Shown: positions 34,242 through 43,518 of the stretch, one piece after another
Layout of the letters: every line of letters starts with the position of its first letter
Numbering within the stretch: position 1 is the stretch's first letter
From: Vitrella brassicaformis CCMP3155
Taxonomy: Eukaryota; Protista; Chromerida
Reading direction: 5' to 3'
Assembly (NCBI GenBank): GCA_001179505.1
Contig: CDMY01000376.1
Location: 372,001-436,000 of the forward strand
DNA length: 64,000 nt
The notes under the pieces: generated by a model
Told to the model about the DNA's origin: nothing
The model's input: the letters and a program-made list of their open reading frames with translations, nothing else
Databases searched by the model: none
Made by a program: the position numbers and the translations under genes

Positions 34242-35975
34242 TTAGGCCTTTTTGCTCTCCAACGACTTTGACACACCGTACAGGAGTGTGCCGCCGACGG
34301 CGATGGCCGATCCGAGTGCGCCGAGTGGTGTGAATTTGGTACCGAAGACGATGACGGACGCCAGGATGAGGGCCACGCGCTTGAAGGTGTTGGCCACGGC
34401 GTGACTCACAGTGTTCAAACGAGACAGAGACAGGAAGGCCACCTGAACAAGACAGATAAGACACACGTGCGGCAATGTGTAAGTGTGTGTGCAGCCACCC
34501 ATGGGTTGGTTTGGTTCTCACCTCGTTGTAGAGGTAGTACCAGAATCCCGATCCGACGACGTGTCGGATGATCTGCTTGCCGGTGATGCCGTTGGCGAGT
34601 GCGTTGTTCCACACGGGCACGATCGACTTCATGTCGAACAGCGCCAGAGGCACCAGGAACATGGTCGCGAAGATCGTCAGGATGGCGTACATGTTGCTGG
34701 GCGTCAGGTTCTCGCCAAGCTTGTCCTTGTCGCCCATCGCCTTCTTGCTGTAGATACCTGCACTCACACAACAAACAGAAGCACCGGTGAGTGACACACA
34801 TACTGACTGACTGGCTGTAGTTGCTGGTCTGGTCTACTGGTGAACCGTGTCCGTGTCTGTCTGTCGGCGGACCTCTGAGCGATGACCCGACGTTGGAGAC
34901 CATGGCACCGATGAAGGCCCTCCAGGTGAAAGAGAGCTCCTTGAGCGACGCGAGCGACACGCCAAAGATGATGGGGACCAGGCTGAGGTAGGTTAGGGGC
35001 GAGAGGTAGTTCTGCAGCACCACCGCAGAGAGCACCGAGGTCGTCACGGGCTCGGCCGCCTTGACGATGTGGACGAACGAGATGGCGCCGGCGCCCAGTG
35101 CGATGACGGCCGAGATGTGGACGGATGCGTGGAAGAGGCCCTGGATTGCGAGCTGCTTGACGCCCTCGGAGTTGTAGATCTTGGGCTTGGGTCGGATGCC
35201 GGTGAGCCAGGGGAGCATGAAGATGGGGATGCCCACGAGCATCTGGAGGGCTGACACCGTCAGCGGCAGGGGGTACAGGTTCAGCGCCCTCTTGTTGTCC
35301 ACATTGTACAGCACGTTGAACGCATACCTGATAGATACATACACACACACACATGGATGGATGGACGGATGGATGGATGTCTCCCCTGGTACCACCAGCA
35401 TAGCATGTGTGTGCCTCACTGCCTGACTGACTGACTCACCAGAGGAAGAGGAAGAAGAAGGTCTTGGCGGTCTCGACCATGTCACTCCCGGTGTCCCCGT
35501 TGACCTCCTTCTTGAGGGTGCTCAGCGACTTCTGGTACCCCTGCTTCTCCAGAAACGCCATGACCTTGTCCAGGTCAAGGTCGAGCGTGCTTGTCGCCAT
35601 CGACGTGGTCGTCGCCTCGGTCGTGGCCACCGACTCTAGCGCCGTCATGCCCTCGGGGAAGAGCCGGCCATTCCTCGCCCGCCCGAATCGCTGCGCTGAT
35701 GGGACGGGCTGCGAGAATGGGGAGGCCACGAAGCCCTCACCGGACGCCATGAGGGAGGCGAATGCGTCGGCGGCATCGTCCAGGTCCGACAGGAAGGCGT
35801 CCGTTGCGTCGTCCCGTGCAGTGGTGTCGGCCTCTTCCTGGAGATCCTGCCTTTCCAGCAGCGGCGCCAGCTGGTTGAGGCCTCGTGTGGCGCGGATCTT
35901 GTATGCCACACTGCTGGCATACCCGCAGCTCACCAGGCATGCGAGGCATAGCGCAATGACGCTCCTCATCATCAT
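34242..35975 (-). CDS. TPT: Plastid triose-phosphate/phosphate translocator (pPT, apicoplast TPT-like) with bipartite leader
   Basis: W|YAFNVLYNVDNKRALN, GAISFVHIVKAAEPV, YLSLVPIIFGVSLAS, GFWYYLYNE|VAFLSL..LNTVSHAVANTFKRV. Signal peptide MMMRSVIALCLACLVSCGYA. Confidence 0.95.
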
Positions 35976-36200
35976 ACTGGTCGGGGTGGGCAGATGAGAT
36001 GGTGAGTGGAGGAGGGCGGGCTGCTCAGGAAGGAGGGGGGAGGAGCAGGGGTGGTAGAGGCGGTACTTCAACTTTGAGCTCGCACCAGTGGGATCGTTTC
36101 GTTTTTCGAAGGCGCTGACGGGCAGCCCACCCATCGCCATTCTGCAACGTGTTTGTAGCTTAGCTCTCTGCTGCTGGTGATCTGATTGAGCGCTCACCAC

Positions 36201-39169
36201 ATGGCCGGGAAAAAACAAATGGCCGGTGGGGGGAAGGAGTCGTGGAGGCTACCTTTGCCGTGCGTTGAGACGTTCTCCAAGCTCTTTTTCACAAAGAATC
36301 CGCCAGGTAAGATCAGAAAACACATACGGGATGCCTCCCTCACTGTGCTTGCACTGGGTGGTGTGGCTGCAGCGGAGGAGCAGATTATTCTACTGCCGGA
36401 ACCTGCTCCCGCCGCCAACACGGCCCATCCCGCACCACCGCCATCATCATCAGCAGCAGCGCCAGCATCAGCAGCACCAGCAGCAGCAGCAGCAGGAGCA
36501 TCGACCTCCAGCTCATCGGTGGCCGCATGTGGCCCTGCGGTGATCCTACCAGACCGGCAGGCTGACGGTAGGGGGAGTGGGCAGCGTCAGTATGCACCCC
36601 ACGGGTTCTTCACCAATGCGTGGACGAGTCAGCCAGAGCAGCTGACGCTAGAGTTGGTAGAGACCGTTGACAACCAGCCCGTTACGCAGCCGCCGTACAC
36701 CACCTACACACATCCACACACGGAGAAGCGCCTCACATGCTGTCCATCTGTCTGTGTGCCCACCCACCCCCCCACAGAATCTATGCCATAGACAACTTCC
36801 TACGAGAGGAGGTCAGTGCAGTGCAACCTTATCCCAAACCAGCCATGGGACCCTCCAGAGAGAGCAGGTCTGCCCTTCTGCTCGTGCGGGTATGTGTGTG
36901 CAGGAGTTGGCGCACTTGGCCTTGTTTATTGAGTTGAAGGAGCAGCAGTCCGGCGGGTTTAGGAGGAGCCTCACGGAGGACGACAGGGGCGTCCCAGAGG
37001 AGATGCGCGAGCGAAGCTCGTCCAGCGTCAGGATACCCAAGGCCGCCACCCACCTCGTTAGAAACATCGAAAGGTGAGGCTGCCATCAGCCAGTGAGGGG
37101 AGGGAGGAGGGGAGGGAAACACGGCACCACCTGGCCTCTCGTGTGTGTGTGTGTGTGTGTGTGCAGACGTGCTGCTGCTTGCTTCGGCCTGCCCGCAAGC
37201 CACGTCGAGCCGCTTCAGATCGTGCGCTACCAACGGGGCGAGGTAACCTAAGAGTGTGGCCACAGTGATACACGAATTACATCGAGGCCGTCCATCCATC
37301 CATCCATCCATCCATCATTGCAGGAGTATCGTGTCCATCACGACATGGTGGAGCTGCACAAGAAGGGCCGCGGGTGGGGTGGCGTGTACCTCGACAGCCC
37401 GTCGGACGAGGAAAAGGCCAAGGGGGTCCGCGTGGGGACGATACTAGTGGTGAGGCAGGAGAGGAACCTTGTGTTGGTGGATGCATAGTATTCATGGTGT
37501 GGTGTGGTGTGTTGTGTGATGTGCTGCCTGCAGTATCTGCACAGCCTGGATAACGGCGTGGGGGGCTGTACGCATTTCCCCTTGCCCCAAGGCGGACTGG
37601 ATTTCACGCCTGTGCGGGGCCTGGCTATCATGTGGAGCAACATCAAGGACGCCGACCTCACACCAGGTGGGCGGGGCGGGGTGGGTGAGTGACGAAGGAA
37701 GCAGCAAAGACAGGCAGGCAGCACACACTCGAGTGACACGACAGACAGAGGGAGATATCATTCTCTGTCTGTCGCTTGTTCAGACCTTCGGACGGCGCAC
37801 GAGGGGAAGAAGATACTCCGCAGTGGCTGCAAGTACGGACAGACGAATGGGATGGGGGCACACAGAACAGACGCACACAATTAGACGCACCGCACCGCAC
37901 AGGCAGGCAAGTTGGTTCTCTCGACGTGCGTGTGCGTATGTGTGTGGCAGTAAGTACGCCCTCAACATTTGGGTCAGCAACGTCCCCGATACGAGCAAGC
38001 CCAACGCACTACAGAGGAAGGCCACGCAGCTCCACAACCTCCTCGGCAAAGTACCCTACCCCTCCACAGAGTGAGAGAGAGATGGAATGGCACCAATCAA
38101 ACCGACACGACACGGCAGAAAGTCGGGACACACACGTGCACGTGATGATCATGATCGCTTCCCTCCCTCCCTCAGGCCTCTGCATCTTGCGAAGGCCCAC
38201 ACTCTGCCCCCCCTGCGCAGAGACGCGAAGGGCACGCCACTGGAGGACCCCTGTCCTGGCAACGAGCCCATATGTGTGCTGTGCGGTCGGGGCGACGAGT
38301 GGGACGTCAACCAGCCCGGCATCCTCCTCGCCAACACGGATGCATCGGATGGGGCGGCGAGGGCTGTCGAGCCATCGAGGGCGCGAGAGCCGCACGAGAA
38401 CAGGCTGATCATCTGCTGTAGCGCCATGTGTCGGCGGGCCGTGCACGACTTTCCGTGTCTGGCCAACTATCGGAAGCGGATTGCGGCCTCGGCCAGCAGT
38501 AGCAGCGCCAGTCGATCGCACACCGCCCAGGGTAGGAACAAAAGGCAGACAGCGGCACAAGACGAAGCATTCGGTCCCTCCCTCTGATCTGTCTGTCTGT
38601 CTGTTTCTGGGTTGGGTTTGTTTGTTTCTGCAGCCCCATGGCTCTGTTTCGAGTGTGAGGACGACGCGGATCGTCGTGTGCCCAGTGACGACCACGGCGA
38701 TGCCCCCGGGCAGCAGCCGCGGCAACGGCGGATGAAGAGGACCCGGGACTCGCCCAGCGATGAGCCGGCGCGAAACCTCACCCGGCGTCAGCAGAGACTC
38801 GCCGAAAGGCCGAGGATGGAGGAGCTGGGACCCATCATGCCGCCGTCGCCCCTACGTGCGCCAACGCAGGCCGGCACCCCTCCAGTAACCCCAGAGCACA
38901 GCCCTCGGCAAGGTGGAGAGCCACCGGCAGCAGCAGCAGCAGCAGCTGGTAGTGGGGGGGGTGGGGATAGGTGGCGACTGGTGCCCAAGAAACCGACGAG
39001 GGCAGACCTGCGTCGGTTGTTCCCGTCTGTGTTTGAGCCAGGGGTGGACGTGGGCACCCAGGCTGACCTGGGCAGCGATGGCGACTTCCGCAGCTGCCGT
39101 GAGGACCAGTCAGTCGCCGACGAGGGTCAGCATATTGAGACCGACCTGACGGAGATGAAGGACGCGTAG
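36201..39169 (+). CDS. Prolyl-4-hydroxylase-type Fe(II)/2-oxoglutarate dioxygenase fused to a C-terminal PHD finger
   Basis: P4H core: IYAIDNFL..EE, EPLQIVRYQRGE|EYRVHHD, RVGTILV|YL...GGCTHFP, P.RGLAIMW.N, D.RTAHEG, KYALNIW. In-phase splice (ga|g, 38069 to 38176 region) into CVLC...CCSAMC...HDFPC|...PWLCFEC. No signal peptide. Confidence 0.8.
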
Positions 39170-39881
39170 ATCCATGGCATGTATATAGGACACGGCAACT
39201 ACATATTCGTGTAGCTTCGTGTCCGGGCAAGTCTTGTGGGTGCTGCCTGCAATGGTGGTCACCCCGTGTGTGTGCGTGCGCTTTGGACAGTCAGTATATG
39301 ATGGGATGTACATTAATTAGAGGCTGAGAGACTCATGTCATGTGAGCGCTGGTTGACTGGTTGATGCATCTATCCATCCATCCATTCATTCATTCATCCA
39401 AGACCCTGCCTACGTCTTGTCCGTTCGTGTGTTGTTGTGTACATATTCATTTGACCTCCTTTCGTTTCCTTTCATTTCCACACGCTACGCTGCTTGATTG
39501 ACATCTCCAATCGTCAGTCACGAGGAGGGACCACAAAAACACACAAGGTCGGTCGCATAGATAGACATATGCATTGCATTCGGGCACACACGGCACACAC
39601 AGCACAGCTGATTGATCTGATGGATGGATGAACCATCCATCCATCCATCCACATCACATACTCGACAGTCCGCATAGCCTGCTCTCCTCGCTGTACAAAA
39701 CTTGGCACACCTCGGCAGCCCGAGGTGTGTCAGGTGGGCACTCTAGTTGGGTGGCACCCAACGCCCAAACCCTCGCCCGAATCAACAGAGGCCCTCACTC
39801 CCTCCTTGCCGGCTGCTGCTGCATTCGCAGAGTGGTTGGCTGTGCGCTTCGCGCAGGCTGATCGCAGTCAGTGGCGTCCTC

Positions 39882-40122
39882 TCATGAGTCGGACTTCTGT
39901 TTGTTGACGTTGAGCACCGCCATGAACGCTTCCTGGGGCACCTCAACAGACCCAATGTTCTTCATACGCTTCTTGCCCTGCATCACATCACATCACACAC
40001 ACACACACAGACACGAGCAAGGCAAGGCGGACAGCGCGTGTGGTGTGGCCAGAAGTGCGTTTGATGCGTGCTGGTCTTGGTGTACCCACCTTCGCTTGTT
40101 TCTGTAGGAGTTTTTTCTTTCT

Positions 40123-40155
<33 letters not shown>

Positions 40156-43100
40156 ATCCTTCCTGATGGCGGGGATGTGACTCGACGCCACTGGCTTGCT
40201 GCCTGCAGGCATGACACACATGACACACACAGGGGCGACTGATGGATGGTTCGTGCTTTGCTTTATGTGTTTCGTGTGTGTGGTTAGGTTACCCCACACC
40301 ACAGCCGCTTAGCTTACCGATGCAGGCCTGTATGGGGACCTTGAACTGCTGCCGGGGGATGAGCTCCTTCAGGGCCTCGGTCAGCTTCTTGCCGTGGGGG
40401 TGGGCGTTGTCCTTGTGCACCACACACGCCAGCGGCGGCGCGTCCTCGCCGTTGATGCGCACCGCCAGCTTGACAAGGGGGTTCACCCGGTAGCCCGTCA
40501 CACTGTATTCCATAGACGCATACCTGACACACACAGACGCCCGACACTATGATATGGATGGATGGCGGGCGCCCCCCACCGCACCCTTTGGTTCGTGATT
40601 TGAGCATGTCGAAGAAGTCGGTGATGACTTCAGCGAGGGGGAGGTCGTAGACTATGGTGGTGCGGGTGGGCGACAGGTACTTCTGCTCCACCAGCTCGCC
40701 GCGCCGCGACTGGCACAGATCCATCACACCACCGACAAACCTGACGTACACACGGGACAGACAGACAGACAGACATCCGCACACACTACCATGCCGCCAT
40801 CTTCGTCCGTTGTCCGTACTCGCTCGGCACAAGGATTTCCATCCTGCAGTACGGCTCAAGCGTCTCGGCGATGTCCTGCGTCTCCTCCGGCCACTTGGCA
40901 GGGTTGTCCACCATCAGCTCGCGGCCGTCCTTCATCTTGACCATGAAGTTGACCGAAGGCGCCGTCACCACCAGGTCGAGCCCGTACTCCCTCTCCAGCC
41001 TCTCTTGCACGATGTCCATGTGCAGCAAGCCGAGAAAGCCGCACCGAAAGCCAAAACCCATGGCAATGGAGTTCTCGGGCTCGAACTGGAGGGCCGCGTC
41101 GTTGAGCTTGAGCTTGCTGAGGGCGTCCTTGAGGTCGTTGTACTGGTCAGTCGATGTGGGAAAAAGTCCGCAGTAGACCATGGGGTTGGCCTCCGAGTAG
41201 CCGGGCAGCCGCTCGACCTGGTCCTTCTTGAAGGCAGAGGTGAGCGTGATGGTGTCGCCGACTCGTGCGTCCTCGACGGACTTGATGGAGGCTGACAGCC
41301 AGCCAACCTCCCCGGCGCGCAGGACGTCCACCTCCCTCTGTGAGGGCGACATGACGCCCACCTGGTAGACCTCGAAGTCCTTGCCCGTCGCCATGAACGT
41401 GATGCGGTCGCCCTTGCGAACCTCACCGTCAACCACCTACACACACATACCGGTTCACATCATTTCCGTCGACGCGATGCAATGCATCCCTGTCTGTCTG
41501 CCTGCCTGTCTGCCTGCCTGTCTGTCTGTCTGTCTGTGTGGCTTAGTTACCCTGAAGAAGACGACAACCCCTCGGTATGTGTCGTAGTAGGAGTCGAATA
41601 TGAGGGCTTTGAGCGGTCCGCCCGTGGGAGGTGTGGGCGGGGGCACCTTGTGCACGACTGCCTCGAGGATCTCCTCGATGCCGATGCCCTTCTTGGCGGA
41701 CGCCTGGATCGCGTCAGAGCAATCCAAACCTGCACAATGATATCATAGGCATGCATTGGCAGCAAACAAACTCTCCGTCATATATTTCAGGCTTCTTGTA
41801 CTGTGCAGTGCAGTGCTGCTCGCTCACCGATGGTTGTCTCGATCTCGTCGAGGACGCGATCCGGGTCAGCAGCCTGACGCGACACATCACATCAACAACC
41901 AAGACACCATCCATCCATCCATCCACTCCCCTCGCCCGCAAGGCCTCTCCTCTCTGTCGAATGCTCTTCCTTACCGGCATGTCGATTTTATTGAGCACAG
42001 GTATGACCTCCAAATCGTTGTCGATAGCCAGGTACACGTTGGCCAGTGTCTGCGCCTGCACACCCTGGCTGGCGTCAACCACCAGCAGGGCCCCCTCGCA
42101 GGCCGCCAGGGACCGTGACACCTCGTACGAGAAGTCGACATGGCCTGCGGGCAGCCGCGAAACACAGAGAGAGGTCATACAGACGGTGTCTGTCTTGGAG
42201 TGAGCGTCTCCTCTTCGCGGCCTCTTTGTAAGGCAGACATACACACCATACCTGGCGTGTCGATGAGGTTGAGGATGTAGGTCTTGCCATCCTTGGCGGC
42301 GTAACGCATCCGTGCTGCCTGATGACGGAAGACCACACACACACACACACACATGCACACACACATGTGAGGGTGAGAAGGAGGGCTGGCGATGGGGAGG
42401 GTGGGGGGGGTGGGGGGGCGACCTGCAGTTTGATGGTTATTCCCCTTTCCCTCTCCAGGTCCATGCTGTCGAGAAACTGAGCCTGCATGTCCCGAGACTC
42501 AACTGACACACACACACACACACACATACGAGGCAGCATCACATCCACACCACCCACCCCCCGGCCGTCGAACGGACCTGCTTTGGTCATTTCGAGCATT
42601 CTGTCAGCCAGTGTGGATTTGCCGTGGTCGATGTGGGCGATGATGCAGAAGTTGCGGATCAGAGAGGGGTCGTAGTCAGACCTGGGGGAGGGCATTTGCC
42701 TGCCCGCGGGGGACGACACACGGGGTGGTGCACTCTGCACTGCAGGGGTGTGTGCATCTGCTGCTTTGGGGGGCGGTGCTGCTGGGGGGTCTGCTGTCAC
42801 AGACGGGGCCGGCCGCTCTGCGAACAGCACCAGAGGGAGGGACAACAAGCACAATAATCCGTCGGTGAAGGAGATAGCATTCGTTGTGTTGTGCGCCCAC
42901 CTTGTGTGGCGGATGACATATGCGCTGCAGGTCGCCGCCTCTGGTGCCGCATAGCAGCCGGTGCAGCTCGCCTCGGCCACCTCATCACGCCAGGCCGCAC
43001 GAAGGCTTCGCTGCCACTCGCGAGTGTCGAAAGAATGGATCCACCTGCAGACATACAGCAGAGGCATAAAACATTCATTCGCAGCCAACACAAAGGAAGG

Positions 43101-43518
43101 CCAATGACATCAATGACGAGCAATCAGGCGTGTGTGCACTGTACTGCCGAGATGACTCACTTGGTAGATGCGCTGCATCAGAACAGAGCCAGTGAAAGAA
43201 GCAGCCGATTGACAGAGTGGTCCACAGGGAGTGCCATCTTCGAAATGGCCTCCAGCAGGTCCTGTTGCCTCGGTGTGAAGCAGCCTCCCGCCTCAGATCT
43301 GAGCGTGTTGATGCGCTGCTCGCCGGATCTGGCGCACAAGAGGCAGATTCGGCAATGCAGGGCTCCATTCTTTGCATCCTTTTCGCAACCTTAGGGGAGC
43401 CAGTCTTTTTGCGAGCCCGAGTCTGAGCTTGCGTGAGGCGAAAGTGAGCTCTCCTGTAAGGTAAGCGGTGTGTAGCAGAGGGTCCGAAGCAGCAGTGTAT
43501 TGGCAGCATTTCTCTCAT
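39882..43518 (-). CDS. lepA: Translation factor LepA/EF-4 (GUF1), plastid type with bipartite leader
   Basis: [36 protein letters not shown]|[77 protein letters not shown]. The start may be ATG 43377 rather than 43518. Confidence 0.97.

Follow-up and report, generated by a model that had tools for sequence, protein, structure and literature searches.

A prolyl 4-hydroxylase domain and a PHD-like C4HC3 finger encoded by one expressed gene of the alga Vitrella brassicaformis

A 64,000-nucleotide stretch of the Vitrella brassicaformis CCMP3155 genome (GenBank assembly GCA_001179505.1, contig CDMY01000376.1, positions 372,001 to 436,000 of the forward strand; hereafter the window, whose own numbering is used throughout) contains a gene that combines a prolyl 4-hydroxylase (P4H) domain with a cysteine-rich finger. 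The two parts are transcribed as one mRNA and form one protein rather than belonging to two genes. The gene occupies positions 36201–39169 on the plus strand and, in the model rebuilt from the window sequence, has 11 exons that encode 675 amino acids. Five parts can be distinguished in the protein: a disordered N-terminal region rich in Ala, Pro, and Ser (residues 1–142), the P4H domain (residues 143–352), a short linker, the finger (residues 412–505), and a basic patch followed by a Pro/Arg-rich tail. The chains of its relatives stop 2–55 residues past the strand that bears the catalytic Lys, whereas this protein runs approximately 320 residues further. A C-terminal finger extension was found in none of the approximately 50 nearest P4H relatives, and no such P4H-finger architecture was found in the literature searched, in line with an initial annotation made from the sequence alone, which had regarded the architecture as undescribed. 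The fusion is genuine and apparently unique, with one gene in one species.

Transcript evidence and the oxygenase domain

With exon 10 of this gene as the query, HMMER was run exhaustively against 1.84 billion representative sequences and recovered a protein of 584 amino acids (P0001), which is 100% identical to the gene model from residue 92 onwards to its C-terminus. This protein, which comprises the C-terminal residues and lacks the first 91, served as the reference for the full-length searches. It is encoded by one unbroken open reading frame (ORF) on two transcript-type contigs of the Joint Genome Institute (JGI) from two samples (L001, 5182 nucleotides; L002, 4017 nucleotides). When these contigs were compared with the window by BLAST, every intron was found to be spliced out, and the spliced coding sequence (CDS) built from the window is present in them letter for letter. 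The exons and phases proposed in the initial annotation are therefore real, except at the 5' end, where an additional in-frame intron of 66 nucleotides (36307–36372) is spliced in L001. Furthermore, a look-up of public sequencing runs gave eight holders of the sequence. Logan contigs from two of these (X1 and X2, listed as "RNA?") were spliced when aligned to the window and are therefore cDNA-derived, and those from two DNA runs (X3 and X4) were colinear with it. GT..AG joints were present in X1/X2 for six introns (36695–36777, 36812–36903, 37450–37533, 37667–37783, 37833–37950, and 38532–38633). The gene is expressed and belongs to the nuclear genome of an alga that is rich in GC and in introns.

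The junction that joins the P4H part to the finger part (38070/38176) is read directly in both transcript contigs, in which ...CCACAGA is followed immediately by GCCTCTGC... In the genomic sequence, an in-frame TGA at 38072–38074 lies within intron 9, whose donor site overlaps the stop codon (GA/GTGA). Because the transcripts splice out this 105-nucleotide intron, the P4H and the finger form one protein. The in-phase continuation of one into the other that had been proposed is thus correct, and the TGA that follows PYPSTE, at which transcripts would end if there were two separate genes, falls in spliced sequence. Among the cDNA-derived contigs, depth is zero across 38076–38175, a segment that the contigs of the DNA runs X3 and X4 cover without a gap. 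One X1 contig matches as far as 38071 and has 11 further letters that do not match, and the match of another starts exactly at 38176 and is preceded by 17 unmatched letters; no joint is listed for this intron in the X1 and X2 contigs. Retention of intron 9 would yield a stand-alone P4H of 379 amino acids without the finger, and this form was not seen in the RNA contigs. Both introns that had been singled out as critical are real, although their coordinates are 38071–38175 and 38532–38633 instead of 38069–38176 and 38531–38634.

It is very improbable that the fusion is an assembly artefact of two separate genes, namely a P4H gene ending at the TGA at 38072 and a finger gene downstream. Such an artefact could draw on the stop codon met directly after PYPSTE when the intron is read through, on an ATG at 38087 that opens a downstream frame, and on the observation that the transcript contigs also chain an antisense LepA gene and hence do merge overlapping transcripts. 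However, both transcript contigs lack exactly 38071–38175, which is a canonical GTGAGA..CAG intron, the RNA contigs show the zero depth and the breaks described above, and the 13 nucleotides between the stop codon and such a downstream gene would leave no room for a 3' untranslated region (UTR) or a promoter.

Residues 143–352 match the Pfam family PF13640 (2OG-FeII_Oxy_3) at 33.1–34.7 bits, above the cutoff of 27, over profile positions 1–97 of 98. This is the sole Pfam family found in the protein, and no JmjC catalytic domain was detected; searches with single exons gave no match because the exons are too short. The four catalytic residues, H241 and D243 (VHHD), H328 (TAHEG), and K340 (NKYALNIW), are all present, as stated initially for the complete catalytic domain. 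They are invariant in 23- and 22-sequence alignments of relatives and align with the motifs of B. anthracis P4H. Among solved structures, the sequence search gave significant matches to prolyl 4-hydroxylases only (Bacillus anthracis P4H, E = 1.6e-7; Chlamydomonas P4H-1, E = 2.4e-6; human C-P4H alpha-2), with weaker matches to PBCV-1 P4H and P4H-TM (E about 0.03), and no EGLN, PhyA, or PPHD enzymes were among these matches. An AlphaFold (AF2) model of the domain, built from the 22-sequence alignment, reached a predicted local distance difference test (pLDDT) value of 79. The top 34 Foldseek matches of this model are all P4Hs, headed by Chlamydomonas P4H-1 (2jig and 3gze, about 2e-14; 2jig is best at 2.3e-14, with a template modelling (TM) score of 0.72 by target) and followed by PBCV-1 vCPH (5c5t), B. 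anthracis P4H (3itq), human C-P4H-II (7zsc), and 6tp5, with P4H-TM also among the top matches. EGLN-type enzymes appear at position 35 and below, at 1e-9 or weaker. Judged from sequence and model, these residues are a P4H-type 2-oxoglutarate (2OG)/Fe(II) oxygenase with an intact catalytic apparatus and a predicted P4H fold.

The nearest database relatives of the P4H domain have 30–41% identity. Some are stand-alone enzymes of 210–264 amino acids from metagenomes, many with an N-terminal hydrophobic anchor, and others are Sel1-repeat fusions of approximately 470 amino acids, encoded by uninterrupted ORFs on metagenome contigs. An alignment-based word search added only one more Sel1-P4H protein. 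The initial description of this subtype as normally luminal in the endoplasmic reticulum or Golgi needs to be nuanced accordingly. The closest relative (P0006; 264 amino acids, 41% identity, N-terminal anchor) is found on a Logan contig of 5.2 kb (L033) whose genes are densely arranged and, apart from that of P0006, have no Pfam family. Such an arrangement is more suggestive of a virus or a prokaryote than of a eukaryote.

In the V. brassicaformis protein, no signal peptide, membrane anchor, or hydrophobic segment was found, as had been stated before: the best 19-residue Kyte-Doolittle mean is 1.11 over the whole protein, and segments that begin at any of the first 60 positions reach at most 0.78. 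The transcript-supported N-terminus thus has neither the signal peptide nor the type II membrane anchor of a secretory-pathway P4H, whereas many close relatives have an anchor. Splicing of intron 1 takes out the sole mildly hydrophobic stretch, which would be among the 22 amino acids added by retention of this intron. The Pro/Arg/Gly-rich C-terminal tail has no Pfam family match.

The C4HC3 finger and its possible role

The cysteine-rich finger reported in the initial annotation is present at 38273–38656 (CVLC...CCSAMC...H...C...WLCFEC), with the pattern C-x2-C-x43-CC-x3-C-x4-H-x3-C-x28-C-x2-C. The putative ligands in exon 10 are C412, C415, C460 or C459, C464, H469, and C473, with a loop of 43 residues between C415 and C459, and the finger ends in exon 11 with W500-L-C502-F-E-C505 (38639–38656). 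Canonical PHD fingers have the spacing C-x2-C-x(9-21)-C-x(2-4)-C-x(4-5)-H-x2-C-x(12-46)-C-x2-C. Five of the seven spacings and the C4HC3 ligand order agree with this pattern, and W500, located two residues ahead of the final Cys pair as is the conserved Trp of PHD fingers, is also present. Most Cys of P0001 (9 of 13) fall within the 131-residue finger stretch, and a relaxed C4HC3 arrangement arose in only one of 200,000 shuffles of the same residues. Weak local matches of PHENRLIICCSAMC...H to the PHD fingers of DIDO1, DATF1, and PPS are not significant (E 0.4–1). In an ESM-Atlas feature search, all top named neighbours are PHD families, with scores of 0.88–0.89 (0.88 for the C-terminal two-thirds alone and 0.77 when PHD families are excluded), which lie under the tool's own reliability line of 0.9 and are uncalibrated for protein parts.

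Several other assignments were rejected. The Cys pattern was compared by hand with RING (C3HC4), RING-CH, and MYND (C6HC) fingers, and these readings are out because the His-Cys pair stands third and the C-x4-H spacing suits only C4HC3/PHD. Seemingly strong matches in the PDB to PRDM9 and other C2H2 arrays are an artefact that sums many alignments of 6–7 bits between SHTAQAPWLCFEC and the HTGEKPY-C-x2-C linker, which is repeated in these arrays, with no individual stretch being significant. The only other match in the exhaustive search, a bacterial repeat protein (P0002), aligns to an Ala/Asp/Gly-rich loop and not to the ligands.

The reading that we regard as somewhat probable is a nucleo-cytoplasmic P4H with a finger that docks it on a substrate or on chromatin, and with a basic patch that serves nuclear import. 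This patch, RRMKRTR (R529–R535, 38726–38746), lies downstream of the finger, where it had been noted before. In the proposed mechanism, Fe(II) would be held by H241, D243, and H328 and 2OG by K340, and with O2 the enzyme would act as a prolyl hydroxylase on a proline-rich segment of a protein of the nucleus or cytoplasm. Entry into the nucleus would proceed via the basic patch, and the finger would bring the enzyme to its substrate or to chromatin. The principle of this design is known from JmjC demethylases with PHD fingers and from animal PHD2 with its MYND finger. Reading of histone H3, a proline of a histone or chromatin protein as the substrate, and sensing of O2 or 2OG, as suggested initially, are inferences that go beyond this. 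A full nuclear reader-writer is unlikely; here the finger would bind either a histone tail or a different protein of chromatin or transcription, a nearby proline-rich segment would be hydroxylated, chromatin state would be coupled to the supply of O2, 2OG, and iron, and skipping or retention of intron 9 would switch between targeted and free enzyme.

Several features weigh against a docking finger and an import signal. The first loop of the finger (43–44 residues) is twice the usual maximum, and H-x3-C stands in place of H-x2-C. The His is preceded by Val, whereas fingers that bind H3K4me3 typically have an aromatic residue at this position (DIDO-type: EEWFH), and the usual Trp two residues ahead of the His is absent. 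No Pfam PHD-clan model matched the whole protein or six cuts of the finger at E ≤ 10, although HMMER filters may hide very weak matches; the Pfam comparison that had been proposed supports the P4H-type domain and not the PHD finger. The single-sequence AF2 model of the finger is uninformative (pLDDT 34; predicted TM score, pTM, 0.24), and the finger exon has no relative, among the representatives searched, with which conservation of the ligands could be compared. The limits of the ESM-Atlas scores given above also count here, and RRMKRTR appears to be a pattern that is only similar to a nuclear localization signal (NLS). Taken together, the finger is best described as an atypical, PHD-like C4HC3 finger and putative zinc module rather than as a proven PHD finger. 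It is called PHD-like because no Pfam PHD model matched and the single-sequence fold failed, with the language-model neighbourhood and the weak DIDO-type matches as support. Membership in the PHD superfamily is fairly probable.

A serious rival keeps the same gene and the same fusion, and makes the finger a protein-protein adaptor, comparable to the MYND finger of animal PHD2, for a non-chromatin substrate, e.g., a cytosolic or nuclear translation or chaperone component. The finger lacks a match to PHD hidden Markov models and an aromatic-cage-type Trp before the His, as such an adaptor might. In addition, the B. anthracis P4H of the same structural branch is titled in PDB entry 5v7y as modifying EF-Tu, a prolyl hydroxylase of Toxoplasma acts on the elongation step of translation (PMC6437050), and the PHD2 zinc finger binds p23 (PMC6916684). 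However, the C4HC3 order is of the PHD type and not the MYND order, only PHD families are language-model neighbours, and the basic NLS-like patch follows directly after the finger; we consider the adaptor rather unlikely. A lesser rival, which seems quite unlikely, is that the C-terminal half is a lineage-specific and partly degenerate appendage, with a structural or vestigial Cys cluster in otherwise low-complexity sequence, carried by a soluble P4H that acts on proline-rich proteins generally and possibly on its own Pro-rich termini. Although the lack of relatives of the finger exon, the long insertion and the Ser/Ala runs inside the finger, the flanks with 13% Pro, and the lack of a confident predicted structure are consistent with an appendage, the ordered C4HC3 arrangement with W-x-C-x2-C is very improbable by chance, and the reading frame is kept over two introns and approximately 300 codons in an expressed mRNA.

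To our knowledge, few substrates of proline hydroxylation outside the secretory pathway are known (such as HIF, Skp1, and ribosomal/translation proteins), and almost all of them are modified by the EGLN or OGFOD branches. Here, a collagen-type P4H without a secretory signal carries a PHD-like finger and a basic patch of nuclear type, which suggests that prolyl hydroxylation targeted to the nucleus or cytosol was invented independently in an alveolate alga. If the nuclear reader-writer were true, it would be the first example from the collagen-type P4H branch, in a photosynthetic organism related to the parasitic apicomplexans. Chromatin reading by the finger would extend the oxygenase-plus-reader design beyond JmjC enzymes and offer a new approach to how O2 and metabolites are sensed at chromatin; otherwise, the protein would be a lineage-specific curiosity, encoded by a single gene of one species for which no orthologue was found. 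The construct is small enough to be cloned and tested directly.

Gene model and surroundings

All introns of the gene have GT..AG borders and are 66–118 nucleotides in length (Table 1).

Table 1. Features of the P4H-finger gene in the window
Feature	Positions	Strand	Remarks
5' UTR	36101–36200	+	at least 100 nucleotides; L001 starts at 36101; in-frame stop ahead of ATG (MAGKKQ)
Exon 1	36201–36306	+	start codon at 36201; residues 1–35; first 200 nucleotides of CDS match L001 exactly
Intron 1	36307–36372	+	66 nucleotides, in frame, GT..AG; removed in L001
Exon 2	36373–36694	+	Ala/Pro/Ser-rich low-complexity N-terminal region, residues 36–142; joint 36694 to 36778 in X2
Exons 3–9	36778–38070	+	P4H-type 2OG/Fe(II) dioxygenase domain (residues 143–352) and start of linker
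Exons 3–6	36778–36811, 36904–37073, 37167–37242, 37324–37449	+	exact match to L001/L002
H241-H242-D243 codons	37336–37344	+	HxD iron ligands; align to HYD of B. anthracis P4H
Exons 7–9	37534–37666, 37784–37832, 37951–38070	+	exact match to L001/L002
H328 codon	37798–37800	+	distal iron ligand (TAHEG); invariant in alignments
K340 codon	37952–37954	+	Lys binding the 2OG C5-carboxylate (NKYALNIW); invariant in alignments
Intron 9	38071–38175	+	105 nucleotides, GTGAGA..CCTCAG; missing from L001/L002
Exon 10	38176–38531	+	linker and first six finger ligands; X1 records 4 and 5 fall here
Intron 10	38532–38633	+	102 nucleotides, within the finger; joint in X1 and X2 (sides of 114 and 91 letters); missing from L001/L002
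Exon 11	38634–39169	+	W500-L-C502-x2-C505, basic patch, Pro/Arg-rich disordered tail; stop codon 39167–39169
3' UTR region	39170–39979	+	L001 and L002 colinear with the window up to 39979

A GCA/GCC-rich low-complexity coding stretch that encodes an Ala/Ser/Pro run is located at 36430–36508. There, L001 has 10 Ns and differs from the window by 6 nucleotides in length, and L002 is identical to the window. This discrepancy is an assembly weakness or a length polymorphism.

Downstream lies a convergent multi-exon gene for a LepA/GUF1-type translation GTPase (39880–43334, minus strand; Pfam GTP_EFTU, EFG_C, and LepA_C), and its 3' end and the 3' UTR of the P4H-finger gene overlap. Past 39979, L001 and L002 follow the minus-strand exons of this gene; due to the overlap, these unstranded assemblies chain both genes into one contig. 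Upstream, a divergent ORF (35436–35985, minus strand) with a signal-peptide-like N-terminus (MMMRSVIALCLACLVSCGYASS...) starts approximately 215 nucleotides before the P4H start codon, and the two would share a short bidirectional promoter region.

Two short motifs of low complexity (TG-rich; CTGT repeats) are located at 37494–37518 and 38587–38608, inside introns 6 and 10. Contig depth at these motifs rises from about 22 to about 300 in the DNA runs and is 60–67 in the RNA runs, and the motifs cause spurious joints of 1,066–1,071 nucleotides that connect both introns. The motifs resemble fragments of a simple repeat that is highly abundant in the genome. In addition, introns and the 3' UTR region contain (GT)n and (CCAT)n microsatellites (37141–37166, 37290–37316, 39370–39400, and 39625–39650).

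Relation to known systems

The best sequence and structure matches of the V. brassicaformis protein are collagen, plant, algal, viral, and bacterial P4Hs (2jig/3gze, 5c5t, 5iax/3itq, and 7zsc), with which it shares the catalytic fold, the HxD...H triad, and the use of Lys rather than Arg for 2OG. It differs from these solved enzymes in the lack of a signal peptide, a membrane anchor, a region that binds protein disulfide isomerase (PDI), and a ShK module, as well as in its sequence (about 20–25% identity), a 17-residue insertion after HxD, and the finger-bearing C-terminal extension of 320 residues. For the finger, the PHD fingers of DIDO1, DATF1, and PPS (1wem, 2m3h, and 5wle) share the motif PH-x-NR-[FL]-[MI]-I-C-C-x(2,3)-C-x4-H around its third to fifth ligands. 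However, these matches are the non-significant ones given above, the first Cys pair is 43 residues upstream here compared with about 10 in those fingers, and the Trp before the His is absent here.

Binding of the PHD2 MYND finger to p23 involves a PXLE motif, and EGLN-type domains use Arg for 2OG. Animal PHD2 (EGLN1) resembles the V. brassicaformis protein as a prolyl hydroxylase with a zinc finger, in this case a MYND finger that binds p23 and recruits the enzyme to its substrate pathway (PMC6916684). It differs in that the EGLN-type domain ranked lower in the fold search and the MYND finger is N-terminal with another ligand order. A precedent for histone proline hydroxylation is provided by EGLN2-dependent modification of H3P16, which affects the PHD-finger reader KDM5A PHD3 (reviewed in PMC11103982), although EGLN2 belongs to another hydroxylase subfamily, lacks a reader domain, and is restricted to animals. 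Finally, JmjC demethylases with PHD fingers (KDM5, KDM4, and KDM2/PHF2/PHF8) carry a 2OG/Fe(II) oxygenase and a C4HC3 reader-type finger in one chain (PMC2938197). Although the V. brassicaformis protein has a finger unseen by PHD models and belongs to the classical P4H branch rather than to JmjC, with prolyl hydroxylation expected instead of lysine demethylation, it has the same oxygenase-plus-finger design.

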